Numbered from the stretch's first letter, positions 6,001 through 48,668 are shown. The stretch is 64,000 nucleotides of DNA from Mizuhopecten yessoensis (GCF_002113885.1 NW_018408786.1:411794-475793), one strand, 5' to 3'. Program-made: numbers and translations. The notes: generated from the letters alone by a model not told the origin.

Positions 6001-9000
6001 TTTTATCTTCAAAAAAAACAACACACACACTTAAAATTGTATTATATTCCAAGCTCTGTTTTTAATAAAGCTGACAATTTAAATTAATATCAAGTCTTCT
6101 GGTTAGTAGCATTTTTTTAAAATTATAATTATCTTGATATATACTCCACAAACCGAATGCAGAAACCACCATTACTCCAGTTTGTTTCCATTATAAAGCC
6201 ACTTAACACTTATAAAATATTTCAAATTATTTTAGTAAAGTGGATTTATTAGTGCTTTAACCCTGTCCTACCCTCCTTTCTGGGTTTTGACAAAACGGAC
6301 CCTAGTAGTATAATAACCCATATCAACTCACTTTTTTATTTTGATGTAGTGGGCTCCAGTAGAGATATCTTGTGTGAAGTAAGGTGCGTTGTCGTTTACG
6401 TCCGTTACTCTTATGGTGACCGTTGAAGAGCTGCTTCTTGGAGTTTTTCCATTATCCTTTGCTACTGTAACCAGTTTATATTCAGTTGTAGTTTCGTAAT
6501 CTAAATTCTTGTCACAACGAATAACTCCATCGTTATCAATAGAGAATATTCCATCTTCATTACCACTGAAACATAAAGCATCATATAGTGCACTATATAG
6601 TTGATATTAAAACAAAAAATAAATACAACTAGGATTCAAATTAATACCTCCACAAGATCACCCTCGCTTACCTGATGAAGTTGTAACTGGCTATATCCCC
6701 GTTCACACCCTCATCTTTGTCAGAAGCTGAAACATTAAACAACGAAGAACCAATCGACTTGTCCTCCGGTATGTCCGCTATAAGAGCTGCAGAATCAAAG
6801 ACTGGGTCATTGTCGTTTACATCAATGATTCTCACCACCATCGTTGTGGTCACACTGCGGAGTGGACTTCCGTTATCACGTGCTAGTAAGGTGAAGTTAT
6901 GAAATGGAATTGTTTCTCTGTCCAGTGAATGTGCAACAGTAATTTGTGCAACAGTAATTTTTCCCGAGAGTCTATTGTCTATTCGGAAGTAACCGGAGTC
7001 TCCTTGGATTCTGTAAAATACTCGGCCATTTTCGTCTTCGTCCAGATCATTTGCTGTTACCGTGGTGACAACATTTCCGATTGATGCTCCCTCACTTATA
7101 CTCGTTGACCTCCTTGATGAGAAAAATATAAAAAAAGTTATAATAAAACTGTGAAAATGAAAACTATTAGTTACCATTTACAACATATTTGTATCGGTAT
7201 ATAGTTCATCTATATTTCGAAAAAAGTCTGTCCAAAGAAACAAAATATTTTCAACTGTTTATTTTTAAGAGATTGCATTGCAATCTTTCACACAATTTCT
7301 AGCAGTAGTTCTAGTTCTACGATACAGTGGCACCTTCAACTAATTGATTTTTTTCACAAAATTGGGTGTATTCAGCACAAATGATAGACTATATGTATTA
7401 CACAATAATTTAAAATAAGTATCTAATTAGTTATTCAGAGGATAAGGTAACAAATTGAAGTAAGGCGGGTTTGGGTTTGTACTGACAGATACAGTCTGAG
7501 CTAGCAATTAATTATCAAGTAACTTTACAGTAGAAAGAGAAAAAGAAATGAAAGAACTATGTCAATGACCCAGTTTTGAACAAAACATATCCAATTATTG
7601 CAGCCAGAGGAATTTGCCTACACAATTGCCATTAATTTGTGTTATATGAACCTGTATATAATATATATTTCCCAATCGGACAAAAATAATTCGCAAAAGA
7701 CATTTAATTTGCTTTTCGCTCTACGACATTATTACATGTATATAGATTGATTATAGATGTTCAATGATTAGTCAACAATACACGACCTACCAGTCTCCTG
7801 ACGTGAAATCGAACGTTGGTGTATTATCATTGATGTCAGTCACCGTGATGTTTATGCTAACCGACCCTGTGTTTACACCATCATCAGCCGTGACGACAAG
7901 GGTTACAATATCGATCACCTCACGATCAAGTTCTGAAATTGTTGTTATCACACCCGTCTCTGGGTGTATTGCGAAATTACTACTGGCTATTGCGAAGGTA
8001 AAAGAAGGATTTTCATCGGCGTCAGTAGCAGTGATGCCACTATCGACCTGAAAGAAAGCACGATGCAGAGGATATGACAAATGAAAAGTTAAATAAACAA
8101 GTTAAAACAATTAGAAAACGAAGGAAAATAACATTATTTATTAAAAAAATCGGAGGTCTTGCATGAACAATATATGGTGTAGTGGTGAATCTTCCCCCTT
8201 TACACACCTTAACAGTCCTTCCAGTAGAGCTACCTTCCTCTATTTTTCCCGTGTACTTTGAGCGCTCAAACACAGGCGCATTGTCGTTGACATCATCCAC
8301 TACCACTTCAATATCTCCAAGTACCTGTTGGAAAGGAAACAGAAATAGAGATTGTTTTATCCAAGTTGGTGAAAATATATGTGAAAACCATCCAGGAAAA
8401 AACATCCCTGAATGATTTGTTAGTCACAGACCCAAAGGAATATCAACTTCTTTTGTCTCTAATCTACCCTCCCTGATGACATTTCTAGTTTAGTGGTCAG
8501 CATATCTTGTGTTCTTGTCAGAAACAATCCATTTCAGTTTTGATGACATTTTCGCTTACTAATCTCTTCATTAATTTTTAATTACAAGTTCATTTTTTGT
8601 GTGTATGTGATATGACTATGAACCACCAATATCATTATAATAAATAAGACAAATACCTTGATGAAATAAATCGTCCAAGACAGGTAAAAGACTCACGGTT
8701 AGAGAACAAGAAGTCTCACTGCTCTTGAATGCTGTTATTGCGAACTGCAGCTTTTGTTCATTCTGGTTTTCTCTATCCAGTCTTTTCTTTGTTAGGACTT
8801 CCCCCTGCATACCACATCAGCAACTTAAAAATCTTTTAAACTACGCATTACAACAAATTTCAATAATTGGTTTATTCATTAAAATAATCGTTTGAAAAAA
8901 CATGAATTTTTAAATTGCTAAAAGACACCATAACTTATTTGGTACTTAATGAATGATTATATTAAAAATTATAATATTATAACAAATTTCAATTTCAATT

Positions 9001-10434
9001 TCTTCATTAACATCATCGTTCAAAATACATGACATGTTAAACTGCTCAAAGACACTAGAACTCATTTGGTATTTTATGGCTGATTTTCATAAAAGCCTGA
9101 ATTACATATATCTTAATAAAATGGAGTGGGTCAAAAAGTAATAACAACGGTAGCTTCCCGAATAACCCTGGATCCTTAATAAAATGAGGATTGAGGGATT
9201 ACCGTAGTTTGGTTGATTGTGAAGTATTCCTCGGCTCTGCTACTCGCAAACTCATAACTGATGAAGCCGCTGACATTAGCCCTAACCACAGGTGTACCTG
9301 GGGGCATGTTTTCAAATACATTGGCAATGAAATTCAACCCTAGATTAGTGCCAGGTTGTCGAGACAGGTTCACAATCACGTCAGCCGTGTTGTCCTTTAC
9401 TCCATCACTTGCTGTCACGTTTATAAGTATGTTTGCCGAGTATTTTGACTCTCCGCTTATATCCCGAAATGGTATAAGTTCTGTTCTAGCCAATGTCTGT
9501 ATGACGCCTTGATGGTTAATACTGAAGAACGAACTGTCAACACTGTAGGTCAGAGTTGTCATGGTGTCGATATCAGTTGCCTGGACTACACCCACCAACA
9601 GACCTGACAGAGAGGTGGGAAAGATGTCGAACGAGTATGTTGTGTCTGAAAATTGAGGCGGGTTATCATTGACGTCCGTTATGTGCAGGACTACTTTGGT
9701 TGAAGCCGTCATTGAACACACACTGACTTCAATATTGAAAATGATCGGCGACAGGCCACTCTCAAAGTCGAGACCACCGGGTCCAATGCTTACGTCAGAG
9801 GACCCAAGTGTCAAGTTTGTAAGTGGTATATCTGAAGATGCTAATGTGAAAGGATCTGAAATTGAATATTCGATTACTTTTGACTTTGTGTTTTCTCTTT
9901 TCGTTACGACCATTGATGCTCTAATGATAAGTACTTTGAGCGTTAAGATTTTAGAGCCGTACGTAATGTCAAATGTGTCCAGGTAGGCTGTAATGCTGGA
10001 CTGTCCAGTAATGGTGGTCAGGCTGATGGCGATTTTAGAGTACACATTTTCTCCAGATAACCGATATTTCACTGACTCTGGGGCATTATACGAATCTCCT
10101 GACCGCAACGTTGGTAACGTGGCCAGTAACTGCCCAGAAAACATCCCGTCAGCAACAGTGACACAAAGTTCTGTTGGTATCGACACATCTGACCATGTCT
10201 CCAATATGGCCACTATTTTGTCAGCGACCACCAGGTCACTAAACGCCATCTTGGTTTGAATACCCAAAGCAAAACTTGCATCTGAACTAGACAATGCAGA
10301 ATCCAGGATCACGGTCACTGCAGAACAATTTACTTCATACCGGAAGTTATTCTCTGTAAATGCCTTTATAAAATTGACTTCCGGTACATCAGTACATAGA
10401 TTCGCGACGTCATTTGCGAAAGGGATGGTAAAAA
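1..10434 (-). CDS. Cadherin-repeat block of the above gene (13 exons, about 11 EC repeats, some degenerate)
   Basis: Motifs TDVNDNPPQF, DDVNDNAPVF, TDINDNTPTF, IDVNDNDPVF, TDVNDNAPYF, TDMNDNHPTF, QDVNDNSPIF, TDVNDNAPVF; LDRE, LDYE, LDFE. All junctions keep the frame. Confidence 0.95.
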
Positions 10435-13400
10435 CTGAAAAGGTAAGAGCATAGATAACATTTCCAGTTATTCCATTATATTGCCTCTTTCAAACAGATT
10501 TCATGGAACAATTTGCTACGCTCTTTCTCTGTAATTGTAGGTTTTTTTTCAGTGTAACAGTATATCTAGTTAAACATATAAAGCAATGCATCTTAAGTTA
10601 TGATTGTGTAACCGTTTCTTATATCTATATCCATATAACAGTTTATCTTTGGTTGTAATACTGTTATGGTCAACAATGAAGCACGTGAATTAATTCTCAG
10701 TATAGCTTACATGGACAAGTGTCGTTTGACCTTCATCATTAAAACAATTACAGACGTGTATTATTTACAACAAAAAGGTGTACCCTTTTCAAAGATATTA
10801 AGTTTGAAAACAAATTTGTCAAAGACTGGTGAATATTGATAATGTATGAAATAACAAGAGATACCTTTTTATGAAATTTTACTGTATATTGAATACATAG
10901 TATCTGAATAGTCGACTGCTATTGAAATTTGTTCAATTTGTTTGCAGGTTTTAACCACCAGAGGGCACGTTGTTGTAAGTATTGCAACAATTTACAAATA
11001 ATTACAACAGTGACAAAAAAGCAGATTGGTGAAAGGGGTACAATCTTTACAGGTTTAGGTATCCTTGTTCTAGCTCCAAGTGTGCTTTTGATGTTTGGAC
11101 GTTGCAAAGATCAACGTAAAGATTTAACTAGTTTCAAATGAAATGGACTGATGGTAAAAGGAAAATATGTTTGTAGTTAAATATATACATTTAAGGTATG
11201 TACTTATCTCTATATGAACAGTATATCTATAATTATCTACAAATACTATGAAGTTTACTTACTTGGTGTTCCAACAGGCTTTGGTACTTGCAGGGACACG
11301 GTAAGGTTCGGATAGGCGAACAGGACCTTTGGTACTGCAATGCATAAGCAAAAGAAGAATTCAAAACTTAACTACACAAATGAAGTTGTTTTTGATGCAT
11401 TAAAACTAAGATGTAATAAAAAAAAAACACCAAGATACTGTAGCATAACATAATAGTATTTAACTTACAAACCAAAAAAGATCGAGTATGTTGTCTTCAT
11501 TAGGACCATTGACATGTTAATCCAATAATCAATAAGCATCCTCCTCAACCTATCGATTGTCATTTTATAATCTGCAAAGTTCTAGATAAAAATATACTAC
11601 AATGTACAAAAACATATTTTTATATTGTGGTAATTTGATTGATTTGGACCTTTGATCCCAATGTAACTAGGGCTTCTTATCACGAGTAATCATCCAGTGC
11701 AATTTGATAATGAAGCTGGTCCTGAAACTGTTCACAGACTGGCGGCGGATAAGGGGATTATCTACAGTATCTAATCTCCGTAACGTAGCTATCACAAATC
11801 AACGTATAGTTCCTGGCTATGGAAATATGTTCATTTATGCGTGAGATAAGGATAATATTTAAATGAAAACCTAAATCAAAAGTTATTCCATCATTAGTAT
11901 TTGTAAAGTAGAAAAAAATCGAAAAAAAGCATAAAAGCATATTATTTTTTTGGTTTGTCATGGGCATTTTTAAGAACTTTGTTTCCAACGAACCAAGTAA
12001 CTCGTCACAAAAAATAGGAATTTGATACTGTGTTCGGTTACGCATTCAAGACGATTTCTAATGTTATTTGTAGGAGAAGATAAATAGGATATTCTAACCA
12101 CATCAACATGAACGAAACACCTACCAGGCGTGCAGCTTCTCTGATCCTTAGTTTGGATGAAGCCTGACTCACAACGACAGCTCCATTCCCCAAATCTTTC
12201 CACACATGCACTGTTAGGTGTTACACAGACGCCTGTTTCACTGTGGTCACCACAGCGACCGTTGAGAAGGATGTCTGTTCTGTTGGACCCGGTTTTAACG
12301 CAGGGAACTTGGACTAAAATAGAAACCACAAATCTCTCTGTAGTTTGTATGCAGCCAAATAAAGACCGTACAAAAGAAGTATATTAATCAGGATACGCTA
12401 TTTTAGCTATGTTCTAAATGATTGGCTCACGGATGCAGCATGCTATAACATAACTACTATAAATCTAATATTTCTTTAGCTTGATCGAAAAAGCACACAG
12501 TTAACATACAGTTTGAACATTCTCATGAACAGCTGTGTGGCGATTCCCCAATGAATATTCAACAGACTATAATATGCACTTTTTAAACATTTATGATCGT
12601 TTGCAACATAGCTCCGATCAAACTTGTTCTATACACGCAGTTGATTTCCTAGAACAACTTGATAAAATGAGAGAGAAAAACAAAGAAATGTCGCTTATAC
12701 AATGCTGTTGAGTATACCTTAGTTAATCGCCAAAATCTGTTTCATGAGAGAAAATGCAATAGAAAGTAGGTTGAAACATTTGAAAAAAAGACCATCTATG
12801 ATTAATGCTTATGTATCTTTTTTTTATATAAGCATTATATGGTCAACACCTGTACAAATCAGCCCACTAAAATACTAAACGAGTGTATGTGGTCGTTTTG
12901 ATGCTTAAAAATAAACAGAGACTACGTTATTCTCAACCTAGAAATGAACTGACTATCCATTCCACATTCTTATGAAACAGTTTTCAAATGATCAATCATC
13001 TACCGATTTTATCATTCTATTGTTCTGAATATTTCATATTTTTGAAACTTATAACTGTTTAAATATTCTAATTTCTAAAACCTTTCTAAATTAACTCGTT
13101 TGCTGTAAGATCTCAATAGAGATAGATTTTCGTCAATTTTTTGGAAAACTTATGATTATGCACATTTTTCTCTTGGATTCTATTGTCATTTTGGAGAGAA
13201 ATAAAATAGCATATGCAACGAAACATATTTAATTCTCCGAGAAATTATAAAATATGTTAACTAAGTAATCTCGTTTAGAGCGTGATCGAAAACCAAACGA
13301 TAATAGTGAGAAGTGCGAGGTAAGCTACATAATTCAATCGTATAGATATATATTATTTAAAGCGTCCTTGCTTTCCAGTTTCATAGTATAAAAATACTGT

Positions 13401-16400
13401 ACCTGATTCATTGAAATTGATAGAGTTGGGGTCTATTTTTACGATGAAAGCCAGGTTGTTGAGCTCAGCCTTTTGACCATTGACTACAGCTGTTTTGAGT
13501 GCCTCTGGTGTGACGGGGCTTGATAGGGTCACTTCGTAGTCTACATTTACACTTCCTTCCCTACAAAATACAGTTTATATGTTATACGAGAATAGATTTT
13601 TTTTCTGGATTTAAGTAAAGTATCTTACATCCGACTGCATGCGCGTGGCATTACCATTGTGAAAAAACCCTTTGAAGTACAGGTCACAAAATCGGGTAAA
13701 AATTCCGATGCTGCAATATGGTAAGTGCCGACAGGAAATTTAATCTTATACACAAATCGAATAGAATATCAACTTTTTTGTGTTGTTTCAAACAGAGGGA
13801 TGTTCAATTAAATTGTTATACTCACATCAGTGACATGAATGGAGGATGATTCGAAATATTCCCAGAATACATTTTCTCATCATTGATGAGAGCGAAATTA
13901 TCTAATTAACGTATTATTGGTACGTATGTAATTAATTTACATGTTTGCAATTATTATGTCTTAATCAATAATATATATATGGAATTTTAGCCCTCATTAC
14001 AATCAGAAATCTTTCAAAAGCTTATTATTTACAATTAGGAACGAAATTGGCCAAGAGATACAGTCCCAGTTGTGTCCGGCTTGGAACAAGTGTACTATAG
14101 TTAGGAACAGTTATCTTAAATGTTGTTGGGTAATTTTGTCTTTTTTTCATTTCAGAGTACCTCCATTGCTATCATTCCTTAAATTTTATTGTGTAATTTT
14201 GTCTTTTTCGTTTTAGATTATCTTCATCGGTCACATGCCTAAAACGTTGTATAGGGCTTATGAACTTCTGGTATTTGAGAACGATATTGTTTATTTGGAA
14301 TACTTCGCGGAGTACTAGAAGTTGCCATGGCCGTGGACATCACATTAATGGCTGGTAGTACATGTAACACATTATGGATATCTAAATAACAATAACAGGG
14401 GTACATCTAAATCAAAAGCATCATATATCAAACTATTAACATTATCGTGTATCCAGGTAAGAAATATAAGTAACTAAAGTCGGAAGCGTACCTAAAGAAG
14501 AGAAACCCTGTGATAGTTTAAACTAGTATTCACTGCTGCTAATAAGCAGTTTTTCTGTAACAGATAGCCCGCGGGCAATCTGCAGACTTTATTCCTGCAA
14601 AATGATAGTTTGAGGTGTGCTAGTAATATAACGTAGCGGACAACACGCAAGAAACAACTGTACACAAATGTCACTTACGTAAGCCGTAATAGCACAACAG
14701 CCAGTAACGTGTTACCAAGGGACGCTTGGAGGATTATTTTCAACTGAGAAAGAAAAATGAACATATCATGCGCATGTATGGCTTACTGTGAATGGAATTA
14801 TCTGAGCAGACATGTAACTCTTTTTAAGTTGCATAAATATGTGAGCTAGTATATGCACAACGTACTGTGTACACACTGATCAGTGATAATCCAAATAGCT
14901 TATTTAAATGTTAACTAATTTATATCAATTTTAGGTATAATTTAGAGCTTTTTTTCTTTTTTAATCCACACAATTAGGAATCACCTTGAACAAAGAAAAC
15001 TTAGATGAAGTTTCAGTTTAATGGACCAACGGCAACTTTAGAAAAAATGAATATGAATCTTTACGTCTGCCACAATACTTTTAGCAACGTTACTGTTCGG
15101 GTCATTAATTAAATGAAGTTTCAGATTAATGGACCAGCGGCAACTTTAGAAATAATGAATATGAATCCTTACGTCTGCCACGATACTTTTAGCAACGTCA
15201 CTGTTCGGATCATTCATTTCTATTGTAAACTGCTGGATAAGAGTCAGGCTACATTCATATGTCTTCAGTTCAGGCTCGTTTCCCCCTGGAAAATAAATTG
15301 TATTAAATCAAAGAACTTTCTCTTAATATAAAGACAAAATACAGAGGTCAACAGCAAAACAGGTGTAGGTAAGAGATGTTCTATAGATGTAGCAAACTAG
15401 ATCTCCTTCTAAATAACTCATTGTTGAAAAAAGCGAAATAAAAAACTGTGAAAACCACCATGCTTAGAAGGAAATTATTTTCGAATTCTTTAAAATGTCA
15501 TGAAGCTAAAAAGCTAAGTAAATTTCCAGTACGTACTCGGAGTGCAGGTGCCATCAGGCTCAGCCCCGTTGGAGTCGTAGAAGCCCGTCGTACACACACA
15601 CTTTTCATTGCATTCAGAATCCGCCGTTTCACATTCTCCTTTTACATTGTTACACGCCGCCCCGAGACCAAGTTCTGTTTAATAGTGAATCACACATTAC
15701 GTCAGTTAGAAAGAATGGAAATAGTGCGAGACATTAAAAAGACTGTGAAATGTTTGTACACTTACTTAGTAACTTCAGGCTAATCAATGAGATCGAACAG
15801 AAGGCAAAGTCCTTATGTCACTTTGGAAAAGATTATATCTTTTTATCTTAAACAATATGTTGATTTTATTTACTGGTACAATATTATTAAAAGGATTCTG
15901 TAAACATTCGGAAATAATCTATGGGTAGAAAAAAGTGTTGTAATTCCGAATGGCAGAACAAGTACTGTAACCTAATGGCAGAACAAGTGCTTTAAACCTA
16001 CGGGCAAAACAAGTATTGTAAACCTACTTGCAGAACAAATGCTTCCAACTTCGTAGAATCCTGCGGTACAGACACATGTGTCGCTGTCTCCACATCTGGC
16101 ATTCTGATCTGCACACTGGTCTGACACGTCGGAGTCACAGCTTCCACCAAGAGCTAGCTCTGAATCGAAAATGTTAGCAACTCATTTACACAATTTGTAT
16201 TGGGAAAGTAAAAGTTGTGACTGTTATATTCAGATATCGGTACATTTAAGATAAAAAAAATGTAGAGCACATGCAAAAATCACAGGCATCACATCAAAAT
16301 CTCCTCAGCAAGAGAATTATTGCTTAATTAGGATCACTTCTAAAATACTGATATCTGAAAGGTCATAACTACATGTACATTTCTAAAATATTTTTCTACT

Positions 16401-19400
16401 GAAATAAGACATTACCCCTTAGTAGAAATACACTCCAAATTATTATTATAGGAACAACATGTTCTTATGTGAGCTTTATATATTGAAACGAGTAATGACA
16501 GATATTGTTTCGACAAACAATCGAATCGACCGAATAGAACTGCAATACCTCAACTTACAAGTAGTCAGTTAACTCAACTTATAGATATAGTTGGTTGTCC
16601 CTACCAATCAGAGCCCACAGAAAACATTTTTGAAGTAATTTCAACTTTTAAAATTTCAATGTAAAGTATTCTATCTTTGGGTCCTTCCCATGGGTATGAT
16701 GTAAGTCAATCACACTGTAATAATGTATACGTCTGTCAATCAGGGGGAAAGGAAGAAGGGTTGGGTACTTATAGTGTGTCTTCAAGCATCCTTGGCCGTT
16801 GGGAACATTATTATTACCATTGAAGTAAACAGTAAACAGTAAACAGTATATGACGTACGTGCTGCACAGATTCCGCCGGGGCTCCTGTAGAAACCTTCTT
16901 TACAGCTACACGATAAAACACCTTTTCCTGAACAATCAGCGTTCATGTCGGCACATTGATCGGGTATTCCAATAGAACAAGTCTGACCAAGTGCTAGCGC
17001 TGTGAACATTAAACAAAGTTGACAGGTAGGAGTAGAAATATATAGTCAAAGATGACATATAATGATAATATACAGCACTTCTTAGTGCTCAATGTCATTT
17101 GGAAATTTACTCCTAGTGGTTTAACAGCACATGTAAAAGTATCATTCCAGATTCATGGAAGTGTTTATAATACATATATACTACATATTCTACCTGTGAA
17201 TATGAGGTGATTTGGTATTTACCGGACAATTGTGACAAAAGAGGGCTATAAAGGTAGAAGTAGACAGTTTAGTAGTAGAAACCCTTGGAATTTTTAAGGG
17301 TTGTCAGCTCTCTGGTAGGAAATGGTAAACTGTTCCAGGAGGTTGCTGCTACCTTACCAAAACATCGGTTTATATAAGTCACGGTAAGAGATTTTCTGAA
17401 ACATAGCCAGGATTCTGTGTCCGACGGCTGATAAATGGTGACAAGCTCCTGTATATACTTAGTTACTGTTCCAATCTGTGACATATACATGTGCCTCGCC
17501 TTTCTTAACTGTAGTCTATATCGTTAAGGTAACCGATCCAACACATACATGTATGTAGAAAACGTTTAACCAGACGTGTTGCAGTGTTCTGGACTCTCTG
17601 CGGAAGACTTTGATTAGTTTATCGTATTTATCACCGAGCAATGCATAATCGTGGTTCAGACGAGAATGTAGATTTCCCAAACGATGGATAAAAGGTTTCT
17701 TATAACCTTGCCGAAGATTGAAACAAAGTAGATTATATGTGCATTTCACATCGTTTATCCATATAAAACATTTAGAAAAAAATGTTTGGGTAATAAATGA
17801 TGCCCTTAAATCCCTTTATTGGCAGGTAATGGGTTTAGGGAATTGTATTTTACATGTAATTAATAACGTGGGGATATAATACTTCATTAATGAGAATTGA
17901 GTGGGCAATACCTGGACAAACTTCCTGCTAGTTTAAGCCAAGAACCCATATTTCTCACAATCTTTTCACAATCTTTATTTTTAAATAATGCAACAGAAAG
18001 AAACTTTCAAAAAGGAGAGAGAAAGGAAAACTAAATAGCAGATTAGGATGCTATTACGTGTCGACAATGAGATAGGAGGTGTTTGTAGAATGTTTTCAAT
18101 CCCAGTGTTGTGATAAATATGTTTTATATTTATTTCTTGAATCAGTAGTAGACGTCTGTCCAACTGGAAAAGACCAATGGTCCAGCACTGGCAAGCTCTT
18201 TCCTAAAATGTTAAAAAAATTCTGTGCATAATTATTTGCAACTTTTTTCTTATGGAATAATATTGAGAATTGAAAGATTAAATACTTACTACTCAAACAA
18301 CCTCCAGCATCAGCAGCTCCGTTCGAGTCGAAGTAGCCATTTGCACATACACATGTTCCCTGCACGCACTCAGAATTAGATTCATTACATGCAGTTGGGG
18401 TGACGGTACAGTTAGCTCCAAGAGGAATTTCTATCAAAATATAGTTGTGCATATATGTGAATATACTTAAAATATTCCAGTTTAAGAACAGAGAACACTG
18501 ATAAATGAAAAACATTCATGTATACTGATTATTGAAATACGATGTATATGTGGAGACACAAAACAGAGTGTACAGTGGCATTTGCGGTCACATTGAAATA
18601 ATGATTAAAGCAGCAACATTTAAAATATAAATGGAAACATTGAATGAAGAATATACCCATGAAAATATTGACAAACCAATCCTATAAGCATTGGGTAGAA
18701 ATCGATTAAAAATAAAACACATTCAAATAATTATGTTCCAAATATCAAATATGGATAACACAAGGCGAAATATAAAAAATATCACACTGAAAGCATTAAG
18801 AATTCTTAAAATACACAACTTAAAGCACATGCTTCATCTTTAAAGTCATAAAATAAACACTGATGAGGAAAATATAAGGAAACGCTTTAAATCAGACCGG
18901 TTAAATAAATACACCGGTGATGCAAATAAGGCATTTATTACGCACACATAAATATAGAAAATGCATACAAAAACATTACTAATGCACACTTAAACATTTT
19001 TTATATAAAATATAAAAGTAAAACATTGATAAAACAATAATAACGAAAGTAAAACAAAAAGAAAGCACAAAAACATTGCGAAAAGCAAATAAAACATTGA
19101 TAATACATAGTAAAGTATTGATAATGAATACTTAAACATAGATGATATAAAAAAAAAAAAACCACATACAACATTGATAATACATAGTAAGTATTGATAA
19201 TGAATACTTAAACATAGATGATATATAAAAAAACACATAAAACATTGATAATTCACAGAAGAATATTTATAAAGAACACTTAAACATAGATACTATAAAA
19301 AATACTAAAACATTGAGAAAGCACATTAAACATTGATAATGTGTACTACACGTTGAGAACACACACTGAAACATTAACTATGCAAACTTAAACATTGACT

Positions 19401-22400
19401 ATACACAAGAAAACATTGATAATGAACAAAACATCAGTAATGCTGCTCAAATATGTTAATAAACACAAAAGTATTGATAAGCACACTACAACATTGATAA
19501 CGCACACTTAAACACTGCAAACACACACATAAACATTGATAATATACACTTAAACATGGATAGAGAAAGCACACTTAAACACTGTAAACACACATAAACA
19601 TTGATGATGCAACTTTGATATTGATAATATACAGTAAAATATTTATAATGCTAGTTAACATTAGTAATGCACACTGAGACACGACAAAAGTCTGAAATAA
19701 TGCTTTGAAAAAAATGACTGTGCAAACGGTCAATGCTAATACCTACCTGTATCATGATATATACTCAAGCAAAACTGTGTTGTATACAAGTATGTTGTGT
19801 GTTAATATTTTAATGTACATTATTGTATACGCCCGCACACATTTCAATCACATCAGTTTAATTAATATATGCAAACAAACGCTTGGTTCAGAATGCCTCA
19901 ATTAGGCCGAGTTTAGTATTTGTCCCTCGTTTTATATGTGGTAATGATAGTTGTAGGTTTAGTAGTGGTTATTGTTGGTGTGTATTCCGTAATGGAAACC
20001 GTCCTATTAGCTGGAAAAAGAATAAGTTATGATACGTATGCATGTAAAGTATACAAAGCAAGCGACGATTACCGCGATGGCAATCCACTCCAACCCGCTT
20101 ATTACAACGAGAGTGCTACCACTTCGACGTATAGCGAAAGGATACATTACCTGGCATTGTAGTCAGAACTGGTGTGGTAGATGTAGTAGTGGGAGTGGCA
20201 GATGTGGTTGTGGGTGTGGCAGTTGTCGGAGTGGATGTGGAATTTGTGGTTGTAGGTGTAGCAGTTGGGTGTGGAAGTTGTGGTTGTGTGTGTGTTGGTA
20301 GTGGGTGTGGCAGTTGTGGTTGTGTGTGTGGTGGAAGTGGGTTTGAAAGTTTTTGTTGTGTGTGTGGTGGTAGTGAGTGTGGAAGTTGTGGTTGTGTGTG
20401 TGGTGTTAGCGGGTGTGGCAGTTGTTATTGTGTGTGTGGTGGTAGCGGGTTTGAAAGTTGTTGTTGTGTGTGTGGTGGGAATGGGTTTGGAAGTTGTGGT
20501 TGTATGTGTGGTGGGAGTGGGTTTGAAAGTTTTTGTTGTGTGTGTGGTGGTAGTGGGTGTGGACGTTGTGGTTGTGTGTGTGGTGGAAGTGGGTTTGGAA
20601 GTTGTGGTTGTGTGTGTGGTGTTAGCGGGTTTGGAAGTTGTGGTTGTGTATGTGGTGGGAGTGGGTGTGGAAGTTGTGGGTGTGTGTGTGGTGGAAGTGG
20701 GTTTTAAAGTTGTTGTTGTGTGTGTGATGGGAGTGGGTTTGGAAGGTGTGATTGTGTGTGTGGTGTTAATGGGTTTGACAGTTGTTGTTGTGTGGGGGGG
20801 GGGGGGGGGGGTAGTGGGTGTGGAGGTTGTGGTTGTGTGTGTGGTGTTAGCGGGTGTGGAAGTTGTGGTTGTGTGTGTGGTGGTAATGAGTGTGGTGGTA
20901 ATGGGTGTGGAAGTTGTGGATGTCGGAATGGTGGTAGTGGGTTTGGAAGTTGTGGTTTTCGGTGTGGTAACTGTGGTTGTGAGGGTGGTGGTGGTACTGG
21001 TAGTGAATGTTGCAGTTTGTGTGGTAATTTTAGTTGTCGGTGTGGTATTGGCAGTGGTGGTGGTGGTTGTGGGTGTGGTTGGTTTCGGTGTTGTAATTGT
21101 CGTTTTATATGTGGTAATGATAGTTGTAGGTTTAGAATTGGTTTTTGTTGGTTTTTATTCCGTAATGGAATCTGTCATATTAGCTGGAAAAGAATAAGAT
21201 ATAAGACGCATGCATGCAAAGTATAATGGTAATATGTTTATACTCACAAATACCAACCTTACTGGCATTATACAACCGATGGCGTTAAAATCGCATACTC
21301 GTTTGGCTTCTCACGGTGGTGATATAATAGTTGCTCCACTCTTCCTGTGCCTGCTTTTTAGAAGTGGAAGACAAATCATAAAGCATTGTATACATGTGAC
21401 TCACCTTGAATTTCTGTTGTGGTAACAAAAGTAGTCGTCGGTGTGGTAGTGGTGGTTGTGGTGGTTGTGGTGGTGGTAGGTGTGGTAGTTGTGGGTGTGG
21501 TAGTGGTGGTTGTGGGTGTGGTAGTGGTGGTTGTGGGTGTGGTAGTGGTGATGGTGGTGGTTGTCGGTGTCGCAATAGTGGTTGTAGGAGTGGTTGTGGT
21601 GGTTGTCGGTGTGGTAGTTGTGGTTGTCGGTGTGGTAGTGGTGGTTGTGGGTGTGGTAGTGGTGATGGTGGTGGTTGTCGGTGTCGCAATAGTGGTTGTA
21701 GGAGTGGTTGTGGTGGTTGTCGGTGTGGTAGTTGTGGTTGTCGGTTTTGTAGTTGTGGTTGTCGGTGTGGTAGTTGTGGTTGTCGGTGTGGTAGTGGTGG
21801 TTGTCGGTGTGGTAGTGGTGGTTGTGGGTGTGGTAGTGGTGGTTGTCGGTGTGGTAGTGGTGGTTGTCGGTGTGGTAGTGGTGGTTGTCGGTGTGGTAGT
21901 GGTGGTTGTCGGTGTGGTAGTGGTGGTTGTCGGTGTGGTAGTGGTGGTTGTCGGTGTGGTAGTGGTGGTTGTCGGTGTGGTAGTGGTGGTTGTCGGTGTG
22001 GTCGTTGTGGTTGTCGATGTGGTAGTGGTGGTTGTCGGTGTGGTCGTTGTGGTTGTCGGTGTGGTCGTTGTGGTTGTCGATGTGGTAGTGGTGGTTGTCG
22101 GTGTGGTCGTTGTGGTTGTCGGTGTGGTAGTGGTGGTTGTTTGTTCAGTGGTAGAAGTGGTTGTCGGTGTGGTCGTTGTGGTTGTCGGTGTGGTAGTTGT
22201 GGTTGTTTCTTCTGTGGTTATAGTTGTGGGTTGTGTTGTTGTAGTTGTAAGTTCTGTGGTTATAGTTGTGGGTTGTGTTGTTGTAGTTGTAAGTTCTGTG
22301 GTTATAGTTGTGGGTTGTGTGGTTGTAGTTGTGGGTTGTGTTGTCGTAGTTGTAAGTTCTGTGGTTGTAGTTGTGGGTTGTGTGGTTATAGTTGTGGGTT

Positions 22401-22844
22401 GTGTTGTTGTAGTTGTAAGTTCTGTGGTTATAGTTGTGGGTTGTGTTGTTGTAGTTGTAAGTTCTGTGGTTATAGTTGTGGGTTGTGTGGTTGTAGTTGT
22501 GGGTTGTGTTGTCGTAGTTGTAAGTTCTGTGGTTGTAGTTGTGGGTTGTGTGGTTATAGTTGTGGGTTGTGTTGTTGTAGTTGTAAGTTCTGTGGTTATA
22601 GTTGTGGGTTGTGTTGTTGTAGTTGTAAGTTCTGTGGTTATAGTTGTGGGTTGTGTGGTTGTAGTTGTGGGTTGTGTTGTCGTAGTTGTAAGTTCTGTGG
22701 TTGTAGTTGTGGGTTGTGTTGTTGTAGTTGTGGGTTGTGTTGTTGTAGTTGTAAGTTCTGTGGTTATAGTTGTGGGTTGTGTTGTTGTAGTTGTAAGTTC
22801 TGTGGTTGTAGTTGTAGCTTCTGTTGAAGTTGTCGTTGAACTAT
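1..22844 (-). CDS. Mucin/EB-EGF/SEA/cadherin-repeat protein (Fat/protocadherin-like cadherin superfamily member); partial, 3' end beyond the left edge, 5' end unresolved
   Basis: Phase-compatible GT-AG exons, 5'->3': 22844-21405, 18430-18290, 16999-16859, 16159-16028, 15674-15537, 15285-15173, 14743-14679, 13560-13403, 12313-12125, 11334-11263, 10434-9203, 8804-8697, 8324-8208, 8047-7791, 7112-6672, 6565-6332, 5786-5249, 4061-3884, 3578-3475, 3058-2903, 1436-1334, 986-696, 128-<1. There are eight DxNDNxPxF linkers plus LDRE/LDYE/LDFE and AxDxG cadherin Ca-binding motifs. The join of the mucin exon to 18430 is inferred from phase only. Confidence 0.85.
12125..12313 (-). CDS. EGF-like exon between the SEA domain and the cadherin stalk
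   Basis: Phase 1-1 exon VQVPCVKTGSNRTDILLNGRCGDHSETGVCVTPNSACVERFGEWSCRCESGFIQTKDQRSCTP, with the EGF C-x-C-x2-G-F-x7-C end. Confidence 0.88.
13403..15285 (-). CDS. SEA domain split over three exons (15285-15173, 14743-14679, 13560-13403)
   Basis: Spliced translation GNEPELKTYECSLTLIQQFTIEMNDPNSDVAKSIVAD|LKIILQASLGNTLLAVVLLRLT|EGSVNVDYEVTLSSPVTPEALKTAVVNG...IDPNSINF. This fits the SEA pattern (F-T-x2-[LM]-x-D-x2-S ... GSVxVDY ... IDPxSI). Phases 1/0/2/1 are consistent. Confidence 0.8.
15537..18430 (-). CDS. Four tandem phase 1-1 exons, each a 6-Cys EB/EGF-like module
   Basis: Exons 18430-18290, 16999-16859, 16159-16028, 15674-15537. Each reads LGxxC...C...NxxC...CxCxxG[FY][FY]...C, e.g. LALGQTCSIGIPDQCADMNADCSGKGVLSCSCKEGFYRSPGGICAA. 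Confidence 0.88.
17270..17700 (-). mobile_element. Degenerate 3' end of a CR1/L2-group LINE ORF2, intronic
   Basis: Frameshifted fragments SRLNHDYALLG..KL, RVQNTATRLV, KYIQELVTIYQPS and RCFGKVAATSWNSLPFPTRELTTL resemble the post-RT C-terminus of L2/CR1 elements. Confidence 0.65.
18960..19640. repeat. Degenerate A-rich intronic tandem repeat
   Basis: Recurring aaacattgataat and cacttaaaca motifs with irregular spacing. Confidence 0.7.
19913..20010 (-). CDS. Short duplicated Thr-rich exon ending in a stop; candidate alternative terminal exon
   Basis: Acceptor ttttccag, then ANRTVSITEYTPTITTTKPTTIITTYKTRDKY*. 19927-20053 is a diverged copy of 21100-21225. Confidence 0.4.
20151..21183 (-). pseudogene. 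Second Thr-rich mucin exon, disrupted (pseudo-exon or stop-containing terminal exon)
   Basis: Good acceptor (ttttccag) and donor (CCAG|gtaatg). It has an in-frame TAA at 21157-21155 (ANMTDSITE*), a frameshift near 20266, a length of 1033 bp (not 3n) and a G-run at ~20794-20811. Confidence 0.65.
21405..22844 (-). CDS. Thr/Pro-rich mucin-type exon (480 codons; TTTTTQPTTITTEL and TTTPTTT repeats)
   Basis: 1440-bp phase 1-1 exon with acceptor ttcag|AT and donor CAAG|gtgagt. The Thr-rich minus-strand frame is open throughout; the poly-Val ORF 21419-22873 (+) is its antisense mirror. Confidence 0.8.
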
Positions 22845-22950
22845 CTGAAACAAATACAGTAATTTCTAGTTAACATTAATTGTCTAGCCCTGACGCTTAT
22901 GATACCACCTATCTCAATTTTTTTTTAAATGAGTACTCACCGATACTCAC

Positions 22951-37979: not shown

Positions 37980-39335
37980 CTTACCAGGGTGGATCTAGTG
38001 TAGCATTGTAAATTGAAGTGTATATTGCAACATTAGTAAATTAAGTGTAGCAAGGGTCGCATATCGAGATAAATACTTAGCGGAAGGACCATAATGTTAC
38101 CAATATATTAGCTCAAATTAATGTCTGTGTATCGGCCATAGCGGTTTTTATATCTCTCGCGTTGATAGGAATGTGATCACGTGAATGTGGACACTAAACC
38201 GTTACCAGTCGACCAAGTTTGGAATGTTGTTGAGCGACTTTGGGCTAATTATATCGTAAAACTGCGATGATATCCTCTAATAAGGATATCAGACATTAAA
38301 TTTTATACCATTTGATTTGAATAAGGCCATGGAATAACCGTAATTAAATCTGTAACGTTAAAAACAAATCAGAAACGTAATATAATGCAAAAGCCCTCAT
38401 ACATGATTATATATATTTTCCCTCCTTACATTAAGTACTAAATATCCTGACATGATGGGCTAAAACTATAAATTAAGAAAAAAAAATGAAGACATATTTG
38501 TTTCTGGACATTGTGACAATTCTTTGCTGTACAAAGACATGGACGTTAAAAAAAGATGTGTCTCCTAAAATATTGTTTTCCTCACTGATGTCGACACTTT
38601 TTTCTGTTGTTCTTGAGAAAGACCATACCGGCAAATATGGTACTTACTTACTTACTTGTTTTAGCACTAGTTCAAGTTCTTTTTTACTGAAGTTTTACAA
38701 TTTATTGCAATTCTGACAGATAAGACAAAGACACTCACAAGGACACACTCACACTGACTCGCACACATCATCCTCATCATCAAGGACACTCTAACTAACT
38801 CGCACACATCCTCCTCCTCCTCCTCCTTCTCCTCATCGTCATCCTATCAGCAACAGCAGCAGCAATCATTCGTCATTCATCATACTCACATTCATACGCA
38901 CGCCAGAACATGTTTCACCCTCATTCACCCAGACAAGACTTATCAATATAATGGTATATTATAAAATTTGTATTCAATACACTGATATACAACATGTACC
39001 TTAACATGACCTGTTCTAGTGATGACCTCTTAATAAATCTGCTCTACGTTTAAACGTTAGTGATAAATACTTTCCTAAAATTATTAAGTTCTTTTGTGTT
39101 TTCGATTTTGAGTAATTGAACGGATTTAAACATGCTAGGCCTTTTGAAATTATATTGCCTTATGAATTTAGACCGGAGGTCTGAATAGCGATTACATTTA
39201 ATTATAAAATGAAATTCATCTTCTATATCATTTTCATTACATAAAATACAGTAGAAGTTCTTACCAATTCATATAACATACAATCAAACTTCCTAAACTA
39301 TAATAATTGTACTCACAGTGACCCTTGTCTTCAGC

Positions 39336-39750
39336 TCCATGGCGTAACTGTCCAATCCCAGAATCAACGGTATCTGAGGACCCATGGCGTCACTGTCCAA
39401 TCCCAGGATCAACGGTATCTGAGGATCCATGGCGTAACTTCCAATCCCAGGACCAACGGTAACTGAGGATCCATGGCGTAACTGTCCAATCCCATGATCA
39501 ACGGTATCTGAGGATCCATGGCGTAACTGTCCAATCCCAGGACCAACGGTAACTGAGGATCCATGGCGTAACTGTCCAATCCCAGGATCAACGGTATCTG
39601 AGGATCCATGGCGTAACTGTCCAATCCCAGGACCAACGGTATCTGAGGATCCATGGCGTAACTGTCCAATACCAGGATCAACGGTATCTGAGGATCCATG
39701 GCGGAACTGTCCAATCCCAGGATCAACGGTGTCTGAGGATCCATGGCGTA
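39336..39750. repeat. 45-bp minisatellite, ~9 copies
   Basis: Unit gaggatccatggcgtaactgtccaatcccaggatcaacggtatct. Confidence 0.95.
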
Positions 39751-39759
39751 TCTGCCAGG

Positions 39760-40400
39760 TCAGAAGATTTGTTGCCATTGACGTCTTTCGAAGGTATTTA
39801 ATAATCTCGGTCACACCTCAGGAGAACGACGTGGTTAAATTTCACTTCCTTGTTGGTAAAGTATGTAGTAGCGGTTGTTTTTCTACATTATTGTCATTCA
39901 GAGGTGCGCAGGTACAGCTGTGATGCAACGAAAGGAAATACTGCATTGAGCTATTTGCATTAATTTCCATTTTTCCTTCATGAAAGAAAGATAAATGGAA
40001 AAGTTAACTTGAGAATTTAGGAGCTTTATCATTGGCGGTACCATCCATATGAGAACACGTCACCACAACCGCCTGCTATAAAAATCTATATGCCAACAAC
40101 GTGCAATGTACCTGTGGTATGATGCATGTGACGCAGATATTGCATATGTTATTAAAAAGGCGTGTGATTTATATGCTTTAGAAAACAAACCCTCACTGTA
40201 AGATGGGTTATACGACATCAACAGATACTAAATCAGCTAGTTGACCGCTCCGTTCAAAACAACACCATCATATTGACATACATCTCAAGTAATCTTAAAA
40301 AAGTCGGAAACCTGATCCACAGGATGTTCTGGTCTATATAACAAAACCCAGTTGTGTCTCACCTGCCACACTTCGTTGTTTACCTGGGCAAAGAGTTTTG
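39760..40400 (+). pseudogene. Decayed coding remnant, weakly GT31 beta-1,3-galactosyltransferase-like; paralog pieces at 31780-31880 and 34860-35030
   Basis: Ordered fragments VKFHFLVGK, YKNL, LWYDACDADIAYVIKK and QILNQLVDRSVQNN. The paralog differs at synonymous positions. Many stops and frameshifts. Confidence 0.3.
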
Positions 40401-46673: not shown

Positions 46674-46938
46674 GGCCCGTATTCATGAAACCGTTCTCAT
46701 GCTCAAGCATGGATTCTGTGCTCAAACTAACTTTCTTTTAACACACTTACATCATGTCAAACGATCAAAAAGTCAATTATAAACATTGAAAACAGTATTT
46801 GGCTTTAAGTCTCCTTAATATTTTTTCAAAATCATTGACAAATAGAGATTTGTTTATTAACTTATAACCAGAACAAGAAATTAGGCTTGAGCATAAAATC
46901 TATACTTGAGCACGAGAACGTTTTTTATAGGCCTTGGT
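46674..46938. mobile_element. Diverged MITE, possibly PIF/Harbinger-type
   Basis: The left arm gggcccgtattcatgaaaccgttctcatgctcaagcatggattctgtgctcaa is inverted at ~46875-46925 (ttgagcataaaatctatacttgagcacgagaacg). Confidence 0.55.
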
Positions 46939-47120
46939 CTAGAGATCCATACCAGGGTAACTCTCCAAACAAAGGACCAAAGATGTAAGCGGCTACGTGG
47001 CAGTGTATATTTCCACTCAGAGGTTTTAGTGAAACTGATGCCCTTGTCAGTTTTGCTGGGAACATTTTTAAATCTCGTTTCACAGCATCTAATCCGGTGT
47101 CCTTCGCACCAGTACAGAAT

Positions 47121-48668
47121 CTGTGGTACAAGGAGGTATAGTGGTACAAGGAACCTGTGGTACAAGGCGGTATAGTGGAACAAGGTGGTATATAGTGGTA
47201 CAAGGAGGTATAGTGGTACAAGGAACCTGTGATACAAGGAGGTATAGTGATACAATGAGGAGGTATAGTGGTACAAGGAGGTATAGTGGTACAAGGAGGT
47301 ATAGTGGTACAAGGAACCTATGGTACAAGGAGGTATAGTGATACAAGGAGGTATAGTGGTACAGGGAGGTATAGTGGTACAAGGAACCTATGGTACAAGG
47401 AGGTATAGTGATACAAGGAGGTATAGTGGTACAAGGAACCTATGGTACAGGGAGGTATAGTGGTACAAGGAACCTATGGTACAATGAGGTATCGTGATAC
47501 AAGGAGGTATAGTGGTACAAGGAGGTATAGTGGTACAAGGAACCTGTGGTACAAGGAGGTATAGTGGTACAAGGAACCTGTGGTACAAGGAGGTATAGTG
47601 ATACAAGGAGGTATAGTGGTACAAGGAACCTGTGATACAAGGAGGTATAGTGGTACAAGGAACCTGTGATACAAGGAGGTATAGTGGTACAAGGAACCTG
47701 TGATACAAGAAGGTATAGTGGTACAAGGAGGAGGTATAATGGTACAAGGAGGTATAGTGGTACAAGGAGGTATAGTGGTACAAGAAACATGTGGTACAAG
47801 GAGGTATAGTGATACAAGGAGGTATAGTGGTACAAGGAACCTGTGATACAAGGAGGTATAGTGGTACAAGGAACCTGTGGTACAAGGAGGTATAGTGGTA
47901 CAAGGAACCTGTGGTACAAGGAGGTATAGTGATACAAGGAGGTATAGTGGTACAAGGAACCTGTGATACAAGGAGGTATAGTGGTACAAGGAACCTGTGG
48001 TACAAGGAGGTATAGTGGTACAAGGAACCTGTGGTACAAGGAGGTATAGTGATACAAGGAGGTATAGTGGTACAAGGAACCTGTGATACAAGGAGGTATA
48101 GTGGTACAAGGAACCTGTGGTACAAGGAGGTATAGTGGTACAAGGAACCTGTGGTACAAGGAGGTATAGTGATACAAGGAGGTATAGTGGTACAAGGAAC
48201 CTGTGATACAAGGAGGTATAGTGGTACAAGGAACCTGTGGTACAAGGAGGTATAGTGGTACAAGGAACCTGTGGTACAAGGAGGTATAGTGATACAAGGA
48301 GGTATAGTGGTACAAGGAACCTGTGATACAAGGAGGTATAGTGGTACAAGGAACCTGTGGTACAAGGAGGTATAGTGGTACAAGGAGGTATAGTGGTACA
48401 AGGAACCTGTGATACAAGGAGGTATAGTGGTACAAGGAACCTGTGGTACAAGGAGGTATAGTGGTACAAGGAGGTATAGTGGTACAAGGAACCTGTGGTA
48501 CAAGGAGGTATAGTGGTACAAGGAACCTGTGGTACAAGGAGGTATAGTGGTACAAGGAGGTATAGTGGTACAAGGAACTTGTGATACAAGGAGGTATAGT
48601 GGTACAAGGAACCTGTGGTACAAGGAGGTATAGTGGTAAAAGGAACCTGTGGTACAAGGAGGTATAGT
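47121..48668. repeat. Composite 18/16-bp minisatellite with a 120-bp higher-order repeat
   Basis: Units ggtacaaggaggtatagt and ggtacaaggaacctgt; 47821-48360 repeats exactly every 120 bp. Confidence 0.97.

Follow-up and report, generated by a model that had tools for sequence, protein, structure and literature searches.

A scallop cadherin-related gene with an EB, SEA-like and EGF-like head, to which a Thr/Pro-rich exon is spliced in part of its RNA

Can a cadherin carry a detachable, mucin-like coat at its outer tip? The question is raised by a window of 64,000 nucleotides (nt) from the scallop Mizuhopecten yessoensis (G000:C5459:411794-475793; assembly of 988 Mb in 82,659 contigs), in which a cadherin-related gene and all parts of the finding described here lie on the minus strand. 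An earlier note, made from the sequence alone, had placed a Thr/Pro tract, four six-cysteine modules, a SEA domain and an EGF module N-terminal to a series of cadherin repeats, and had proposed a sheddable mucin-cadherin. We found that the locus certainly encodes a type I protein with four EB or EB-like modules, a SEA-like domain, an EGF-like module and cadherin repeats, in this order, and that this protein is restricted to scallops as far as our searches reach. On balance, and with modest confidence, we explain the whole as a single-copy type I cadherin-related gene of the scallop lineage with alternative 5′ ends, a mucin isoform supplied by the Thr/Pro exon (TP1) and a tip held through the SEA-like domain. 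The domain order is an unusual arrangement of known parts, from which we infer a possible role as a sheddable, sugar-coated tip.

Stop-to-stop translation of the minus strand gave, in order, a Thr/Pro frame, four short frames rich in Cys, pieces that resemble SEA, a frame of EGF type and finally cadherin frames reaching the low end of the window. The exons named in the earlier note were all recovered with matching phases, and splice phases are compatible along the whole chain from TP1 to the first cadherin exon (Table 1); the middle one of three SEA exons and a 72-nt linker exon had been overlooked. An exhaustive HMMER search with the first cadherin frame (437 amino acids, aa) returned one close protein, P0001 (2233 aa), which is the locus's own NCBI model, named 'Protocadherin Fat 4', and which holds EB1 to EB4, the SEA exons, the EGF-like exon, the linker, extracellular cadherin (EC) repeats, a transmembrane (TM) segment and a tail. 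According to this model, the gene continues past the low end of the window and encodes there about 27 hydrophobic residues (..WFTAMTVLAAVLGVCFTVLLVLIFYFI..), followed by a tail, about 210 aa long, that contains no known domain. For the joined protein, the analyses relied on P0001 and orthologous sequences, with TP1 treated separately.

The RNA of M. yessoensis placed on 15480-21470 came from contigs of three runs (three studies) and from one run of raw polyA reads (X24). All four runs showed the joints 15674>16028 (EB4 to EB3), 16159>16859 (EB3 to EB2) and 16999>18290 (EB2 to EB1), for which there were 70, 73 and 56 raw reads, respectively, and 103 reads continued from EB4 into the SEA region, where the loose-end consensus at 15536 equals the first 30 nt of SEA exon a. 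Furthermore, 11 raw polyA reads with six different starts joined TP1 to EB1 (18430>21405) between GT..AG ends, exactly at the junction predicted in the earlier note. The joint is in frame (..T-T-E-I-Q-E-I-P-L-G..), with 31 nt of TP1 aligned and the repeat left out, and an isoform carrying TP1 in frame with EB1 exists at the RNA level. The joints from SEA through EGF to the cadherin region are based on P0001, the orthologous models and Logan RNA contigs from a related scallop (L004 and L005), which carry EB1 to EB4, SEA, EGF and cadherins in one open frame and run at their 5′ ends into the unspliced, satellite-bearing intron before EB1. Together with the EB-to-SEA joints seen here, this single frame upholds the proposed link from the EB and SEA exons to the cadherin exons.

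The proposed link from the mucin to the EB modules likewise has its RNA joint, but TP1 supplies one of at least three 5′ forms and not the commonest one in the raw-read run, where it accounts for 11 of 30 classifiable spliced reads at EB1 (about a third, in one run). In other mRNAs, EB1 is joined to a different upstream exon or is left unspliced. For example, contig 10 of run X8 is unspliced from EB1 to 19956. Depth over 18480-21470 was 9-26 in X24 (15-35% of exon depth), whereas the EB exons reached about 57-74 and the other introns covered had none; either the intron is retained, or these reads stem from the 3′ portion of a transcript that carries the mucin only. About 15% of the RNA is unspliced, and in it a frame confined to the mucin would come to an end. 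Shorter RNA-derived fragments that precede EB1 were sought in a word index, and none was found. The raw-read animal was homozygous for three exonic differences from the reference (18344 C>T, 16116 C>T and 15642 T>C), the first of which was also present in two of the three contig runs, and these are ordinary polymorphisms.

The open frame of the Thr/Pro tract extends over 21379-22869 (497 codons from stop to stop) and is nearly pure Thr/Pro. TP1, which corresponds to the 480-residue tract of the earlier note, is 74.5% Thr and 10% Pro over its 480 codons, with about 360 threonines. An open frame of this length is no coding evidence by itself, since the A/C-rich repeat can be read without a stop for 230-500 codons in each of its three frames. 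Tandem Repeats Finder detected units of 21, 42, 63 and 168 nt, each a multiple of three, and the translation has seven-residue units; together with the in-frame joint and the presence of the exon in other species, this periodicity suggests that TP1 is coding. Because both of its splice sites are in phase 1, TP1 is frame-neutral like the neighbouring module exons. With its tandem repeats, it would also provide the Pro/Thr/Ser (PTS) domain that characterizes membrane mucins. A Thr/Pro exon lies upstream of EB1 on the same strand in Pecten maximus (L002, 291 codons) and Ylistrum balloti (L003, 407 codons) as well. The acceptor and donor of this exon and the acceptor of EB1 are all in phase 1 in the three genera, and the Thr-rich frame is kept despite different repeat units. 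The intron between the two exons contains the same AT-rich 21-nt satellite in each of the three genera, with an approximate length of 0.7 kb in Mizuhopecten, 1.9 kb in Pecten and 7 kb in Ylistrum.

We rejected a further Thr-rich tract within this intron (TP2) as a coding part of the cadherin RNA: a TP1>21184 joint stops after nine codons, the Thr frame shifts near 20270, and among the joints above the listing threshold in the placed RNA none led from 20151 or to 21184. Upstream of the Thr/Pro exon, no sequence conserved among the three genera was found beyond a block of 85-105 nt at 23028-22923 (minus strand), which is about 80% identical in P. maximus and Y. balloti at the matching position. 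Within the block, a TATA-like element (TATATA in M. yessoensis, TATAAA in Pecten) precedes, by about 25-30 nt, a segment of 29-30 nt that has tttcag on one side and gtgagtat on the other. Either a core promoter followed by a very short first exon or an internal micro-exon could account for this block. The candidate micro-exon inside it is open in a Thr-compatible frame in Mizuhopecten and Ylistrum; in Pecten it is 30 nt long and its phase is ambiguous. A start provided by an 'exon A' (ATG at about 23034) together with the micro-exon was rejected, as the intervening intron would be just 25 nt long and the ATG is missing in the other two species.

The other spliced 5′ form leads out of the window. 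In 19 polyA reads, the acceptor of EB1 (18430) is joined to sequence that is absent from the window and matches once, exactly, at G000:C4628:221926-221955. The match falls in a 74-nt exon that has its own acceptor and a GT donor, and the reads join EB1 at its donor end. EB modules and fn3 repeats lie upstream on that scaffold, and no recognisable exon was found within 8 kb downstream of the 74-nt exon. A paralogue as the source of these reads was rejected: EB1 and the entire EB-SEA-EGF part are single-copy in the genome, and the EB exons showed no mixed bases in X24. Candidate causes of the joint are a misassembly or structural variant, or trans-splicing.

In single-exon scans against Pfam EB (PF01683, cut-off 24.3 bits), EB1 scored above the cut-off (4.7e-7, 30.2 bits) and EB3 exactly at it (3.4e-5, 24.3 bits). 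EB2 gave a weak TIL match and was placed by its six-Cys pattern and its alignment to the other modules, and EB4 gave weak TIL and EB matches below the cut-off, while a scan of the whole P0001 returned EB at 3.6e-10. The four modules described from the sequence are all present with six cysteines, two of them singly at or above the cut-off.

The SEA region spans three exons (P0001 residues 186-306) and includes the motif ..LTEG/SVNVDYEV, the slash marking the putative cut. Exon-by-exon Pfam scans are blind to it because the domain is split over these exons, and it is visible only in the contiguous database protein, where Pfam SEA (PF01390) matches the excised residues 186-306 with E 1.5e-4 and 22.3 bits over profile positions 2-90 of 106. 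An AlphaFold model from four sequences has the order strand-helix-strand-strand-helix-strand (E26-36, H42-59, E63-72, E76-84, H90-102, E111-126). G253 and S254 are invariant in the four scallop sequences and lie in the modelled turn between strands 63-72 and 76-84 (beta2/beta3), and the turn motifs EGSVNV, PGSIKI, PGSVNI and PGSVNI fit the G/S-[VI]-x-[VI] pattern of self-cleaving SEA domains. The best Protein Data Bank (PDB) match by Foldseek was TMPRSS6 (E 6.5e-3), and the MUC16 SEA domain was also listed. On re-alignment with VIA, the sole three chains with Z of at least 8 were SEA domains (TMPRSS6 82-211, Gpr126 368-530 and MUC16 1ivz; Z 8.2-8.5), and MUC16 SEA5 and PCDH15 EC11-EL scored Z 7.2-7.4. 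In a shape search of the ESM-Atlas, the top match was a cluster with Pfam SEA in 60% of its members; a language-model search of the Atlas placed an SEA cluster at rank 5 (score 0.84), which is a weak lead. Weak but concordant, these results make the SEA assignment probable, and the predicted fold, with the invariant G-S in the beta2/beta3 turn, agrees with what the earlier note had expected of a SEA domain. As a side observation, the end of SEA exon a and its donor are partly repeated in tandem at 15041-15145 (minus strand), about 130 nt into the next intron; the copy reads ..NDPNSNVAKSIVADVKIHIHFF compared with ..NDPNSDVAKSIVADVRIHIHYF and could act as a decoy or alternative donor.

The EGF-like exon gave weak cEGF (1.6e-3) and EGF_CA matches. 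Beyond it, Pfam Cadherin (PF00028) matched P0001 with E 1.4e-115 over nine stretches, with further matches to Cadherin_FAT4_N, Cadherin_2 and CELSR2_9th, and we count about 13 EC repeats. The exon translations contain the Ca-binding linkers DVNDNPP, DVNDNAP, DINDNTP, DVNDNDP, DMNDNHP and DVNDNSP. These EC repeats, the DxNDN linkers and a single TM segment after the repeats place the protein in the cadherin superfamily. The stretch from the EGF-like module to the first clear EC repeat (residues 366-665) gave no usable fold in AlphaFold, with a predicted local distance difference test (pLDDT) of 33, and is beta-rich and probably made of degenerate EC/Ig-like repeats.

Orthologues of P0001 were found solely in Pectinidae among the searches, namely Y. 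balloti XP_060078091, P. maximus XP_033732970/71 and the protein called on Logan RNA contigs, and all have the EB-SEA-EGF head. Database searches returned no protein with the EB-SEA-EGF-cadherin order outside scallops. The ten nearest other cadherins begin with leucine-rich repeats (LRR), PKD, fn3 or plain EC repeats (none of the ten with SEA or EB), and a literature search on SEA domains, cadherins and bivalves found no paper. The earlier statement that no characterised protein is known with this order holds outside scallops and in the literature, as far as these searches reach, although the EB-SEA-EGF-cadherin part is already contained in NCBI models of three scallops. These models (P0001, P0151, P0152 and P0154) are named Fat 4 or Fat 1-like, and they are incomplete at the 5′ end, since none has a signal peptide. 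P0001 starts at an ATG inside the intron before EB1, the Ylistrum N-terminus translates the intronic satellite (MFKCAIPMFKCAIS...) and the Pecten models start inside EB2; these N-termini are artefacts. The models of three scallop genomes are thus misnamed as Fat-like and 5′-incomplete, and one of them translates a satellite.

Table 1 Features of the mucin-like, EB, SEA-like, EGF-like and cadherin region. Positions are those of the window unless a scaffold or contig is named.
Feature	Position	Strand	Remarks
Thr/Pro exon TP1	22844-21405	-	1440 nt, 480 codons, phase 1-1; acceptor and donor read
Intron TP1/EB1	21404-18431	-	2974 nt, partly retained in RNA
EB1	18430-18290	-	6 Cys, phase 1-1; RNA joints on both sides
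EB2 (EB-like)	16999-16859	-	6 Cys, phase 1-1; joints in 4 runs
EB3	16159-16028	-	6 Cys, phase 1-1; joints in 4 runs
EB4 (EB-like)	15674-15537	-	6 Cys, phase 1-1; joint to EB3 in 4 runs
SEA exon a (beta1, start of alpha1)	15285-15173	-	Phase 1-0; splice sites, P0001
SEA exon b (alpha1, beta2; LKIILQ..LLRLT)	14743-14679	-	Phase 0-2; P0001, orthologues, splice sites
SEA exon c (G/SVNV turn, beta3, alpha2, beta4)	13560-13403	-	Phase 2-1
EGF-like Cys-rich exon	12313-12125	-	Phase 1-1; 97% tblastn match to P0001
Linker exon (PKVLFAYPNLTVSLQVPKPVGT)	11334-11263	-	72 nt, phase 1-1; P0001 and orthologues
First large cadherin-region exon	10434-9203	-	Starts in phase 1; about 260 aa beta-rich with no family match, then first recognisable EC repeats
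Further cadherin-repeat exons	8324-31	-	P0001 residues 838-1684 (tblastn against the window)
TP2, second Thr-rich tract	21184-20151	-	No coding exon of the cadherin RNA
Candidate 29-nt micro-exon	22979-22951	-	tttcag/CAGTCG...GGGAAG/gtgagt, inside the conserved block upstream of TP1
74-nt exon	G000:C4628:221882-221955 (L006 1499-1575)	-	Own acceptor and GT donor; reads join EB1 at the donor end
AT-rich 21-nt satellite, this window	about 18944-19650		In intron TP1/EB1
Orthologous satellite, Pecten	L002 6772-8720
Orthologous satellite, Ylistrum	L003 about 8350-15500

Elsewhere in the window, 39296-39920 and 46884-48707 are tandem arrays with long open frames on both strands (units GIGQLRHGSSDTVDP and PCTTIPPCTTGSLYHYTSLYHRFLV). 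They lie in the repeat-rich interval of 23-60 kb and look like non-coding minisatellites.

Under the explanation that we favour, splicing of TP1 onto EB1 in part of the mRNAs would place a PTS domain at the outer tip of the protein. If the TP1 isoform enters the secretory pathway, this domain would be densely O-glycosylated; secretion and glycosylation are assumed here, because no start codon or signal peptide precedes TP1. The SEA-like domain would be cut at its G-S-[VI]-x-[VI] turn during folding, with the two halves held together non-covalently, so that a glycosylated PTS-EB tip would stand on a Ca-stiffened cadherin stalk through a joint that may break under pull. After cleavage, the halves of a SEA domain normally remain together until force separates them (PMC10556640), and release at the SEA site would therefore need force or a second event. 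For the same reason the likeliest role would be that of a force-sensitive, detachable glycan tip, working as a mechanical fuse or detachable coat and not by spontaneous release.

Several observations weigh against this account. The SEA score of 22.3 bits is below the Pfam gathering cut-off of 26.4, the point on which the SEA domain of the earlier note fell short, and Pfam SEA was seen in one of the three orthologue segments scanned, with no match in those of Ylistrum and Pecten. The mean pLDDT of the SEA region is 57, which is low confidence; unrelated ferredoxin-like folds scored nearly as high in VIA (Z 7-7.8), and a profile of the four SEA sequences had no match among PDB sequences. At the 5′ end, the sequence upstream of TP1 yielded neither a start codon nor a signal peptide, and the block at 23028-22923 contains no conserved AUG. 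The raw reads come from a single, unstranded run of unspecified tissue. In that run the TP1 joint (11 reads) is less frequent than the joint to the other scaffold (19 reads), and both are well below the 56-73 reads at the downstream joints. Furthermore, contigs of three runs cross the TP1 donor unspliced (21105-21435), after which the frame stops eight codons on (..EIQGESHVYNAL*), and the Thr/Pro exons of Ylistrum are annotated at NCBI as a separate 464-aa gene with its own stop in a second Thr-rich exon.

Some of these points would fit two transcription units, which we regard as possible but rather unlikely. A small stand-alone mucin-like gene would then lie before the cadherin gene or be nested in a large 5′ intron of it, with its end just beyond the unused donor or in a short terminal exon; the first exons of the cadherin gene would lie elsewhere, and the TP1>EB1 joint would be a minor, functionless read-through. 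The unspliced contigs with their early stop, the stop nine codons after a TP1>21184 joint, the read depth of 9-26 over 18480-21470 compared with none in other introns, the separate Ylistrum gene and the 19 reads that give EB1 another upstream partner all point this way. However, a phase 1 donor and acceptor and an in-frame joint are kept in three genera, and TP1 is present in 11 of 30 classifiable spliced EB1 reads, which is more than a trace. The Ylistrum model is itself poorly supported, as it starts with an improvised MDTA and has no signal peptide, and no polyA site or terminal exon speaks for a separate mucin gene.

The 19 reads also suggest a larger gene, a reading that we hold only tentatively. 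Here the EB/fn3 gene on the other scaffold (C4628) would be the N-terminal part, with the signal peptide, and would be joined to EB1 through the 74-nt exon or through the Thr/Pro module, the scaffolds being misassembled or differing between animals; trans-splicing is far less likely. A misassembly or structural variant at C4628 would make the EB/fn3 gene the true 5′ part, and the 5′ end of the gene may expose an error of the reference assembly. In favour of this reading, the splice in these reads falls precisely at the donor end of the 74-nt exon, neither EB1 nor the EB-SEA-EGF part has a second copy, the C4628 gene is built of EB and fn3 modules with no recognisable exon in the following 8 kb, and the cadherin models lack a signal peptide in three species. 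The 74-nt exon is open in the frame of EB1, although 24 codons are open by chance about one time in three. On the other hand, both loci lie deep in gap-free stretches of large scaffolds, the adjoining upstream fn3 exon ends in phase 1 while the 74-nt exon needs phase 2, and a single run was able to show the joint. No homologue of the 74-nt exon or the fn3 exons was found within 15 kb upstream of EB1 in the chromosome-level assembly of P. maximus, and a search for these exons upstream of the Pecten and Ylistrum genes gave nothing convincing.

An extended form of the favoured explanation is doubtful: a giant mosaic adhesion protein in which the 480-residue mucin is an optional, frame-neutral module above a self-cleaving SEA 'fuse', so that the tip could be switched between coated and bare, and whose N-terminal part may come from the EB/fn3 gene. 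That the Thr/Pro tract is untranslated, as a transcribed minisatellite, 5′ leader or non-coding exon with the protein starting downstream or from another 5′ exon, is improbable: the Thr frame of TP1 has no AUG, the upstream block offers no conserved one and the openness of all three repeat frames is uninformative, but the unit lengths are all multiples of three, the Thr-rich frame is kept in three genera with different repeat units, both splice sites are frame-neutral in phase 1, and P0001 has no in-frame AUG with a signal peptide downstream of EB1.

The outermost EC repeats of cadherins are viewed as making the adhesive contact. If these repeats were topped by a mucin, EB modules and a SEA domain that probably cleaves itself, the adhesive tip would be masked or regulated. 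In MUC1-type mucins and PCDH15-type cadherins, the force-sensitive breakpoint is at the membrane; here it would be moved to the distal end. If the TP1 isoform is translated and cleaved, the gene would provide a test case for SEA 'fuses' in series with a Ca-stiffened rod, and for a surface that is switched between anti-adhesive and adhesive by inclusion or skipping of one exon.

Transmembrane mucins are among the closest parallels. MUC1, MUC3, MUC12, MUC13 and MUC17 have the order PTS-[EGF]-SEA-[EGF]-TM, with the SEA domain directly on the membrane. With TP1 included, the scallop protein would resemble them in that a PTS domain precedes a SEA-like domain, which has a G-S-V-x-V turn and an EGF-like module as neighbour, but it has four EB modules between PTS and SEA. 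Furthermore, its SEA domain is about 1600-1650 residues away from the TM segment, with the EGF-like module, the linker and the EC repeats (about 13) in between, and a break at the SEA site would leave a long cadherin on the cell. Fat cadherins have 34 EC repeats with membrane-proximal EGF and laminin-G domains, and Dachsous has 27 EC repeats. The scallop protein shares with them a long EC array, a single TM segment and FAT4_N-like first repeats (Pfam), whereas it has an EB-SEA-EGF head, and Pfam found neither laminin-G nor EGF between its last EC repeat and the TM segment. With about 13 EC repeats and no laminin-G, the name 'Fat' is unfitting; it is a best-hit label and no family assignment. 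The best structural matches of the SEA region, TMPRSS6/matriptase-2 and Gpr126/ADGRG6 (Z 8.5 and 8.3, root-mean-square deviation 3.1-4.8 A over 101-106 residues), belong to otherwise unrelated proteins and are similar in fold only, at 10-11% identity.

Two groups of cadherin-related proteins combine EC repeats with one of the other elements. CDHR5 has four EC repeats followed by a mucin-like domain, which some isoforms lack (PMC8691648), in agreement with the membrane-proximal mucin ascribed to it in the earlier note. Both CDHR5 and the scallop protein are type I cadherin-related proteins with EC repeats and an optional mucin-like part, and no sequence orthology was found between them. The order is reversed: CDHR5 has its EC repeats at the tip and the mucin near the membrane, with no SEA, EB or EGF, whereas the scallop protein would have the mucin at the tip, the SEA-like domain between and about 13 EC repeats below. 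PCDH15, CDH23 and CDHR2/PCDH24 carry the membrane-adjacent SEA-like domains MAD12, MAD28 and MAD10, respectively (PMC6586460, PMC8691648), and share with the scallop protein EC repeats and a ferredoxin-like, SEA-type domain in one ectodomain (PCDH15 EC11-EL, Z 7.4). Their SEA-like domain is juxtamembrane, after the last EC repeat, and has no self-cleavage motif, whereas the probable SEA domain of the scallop protein stands before the first EC repeat and keeps the G-S pair.

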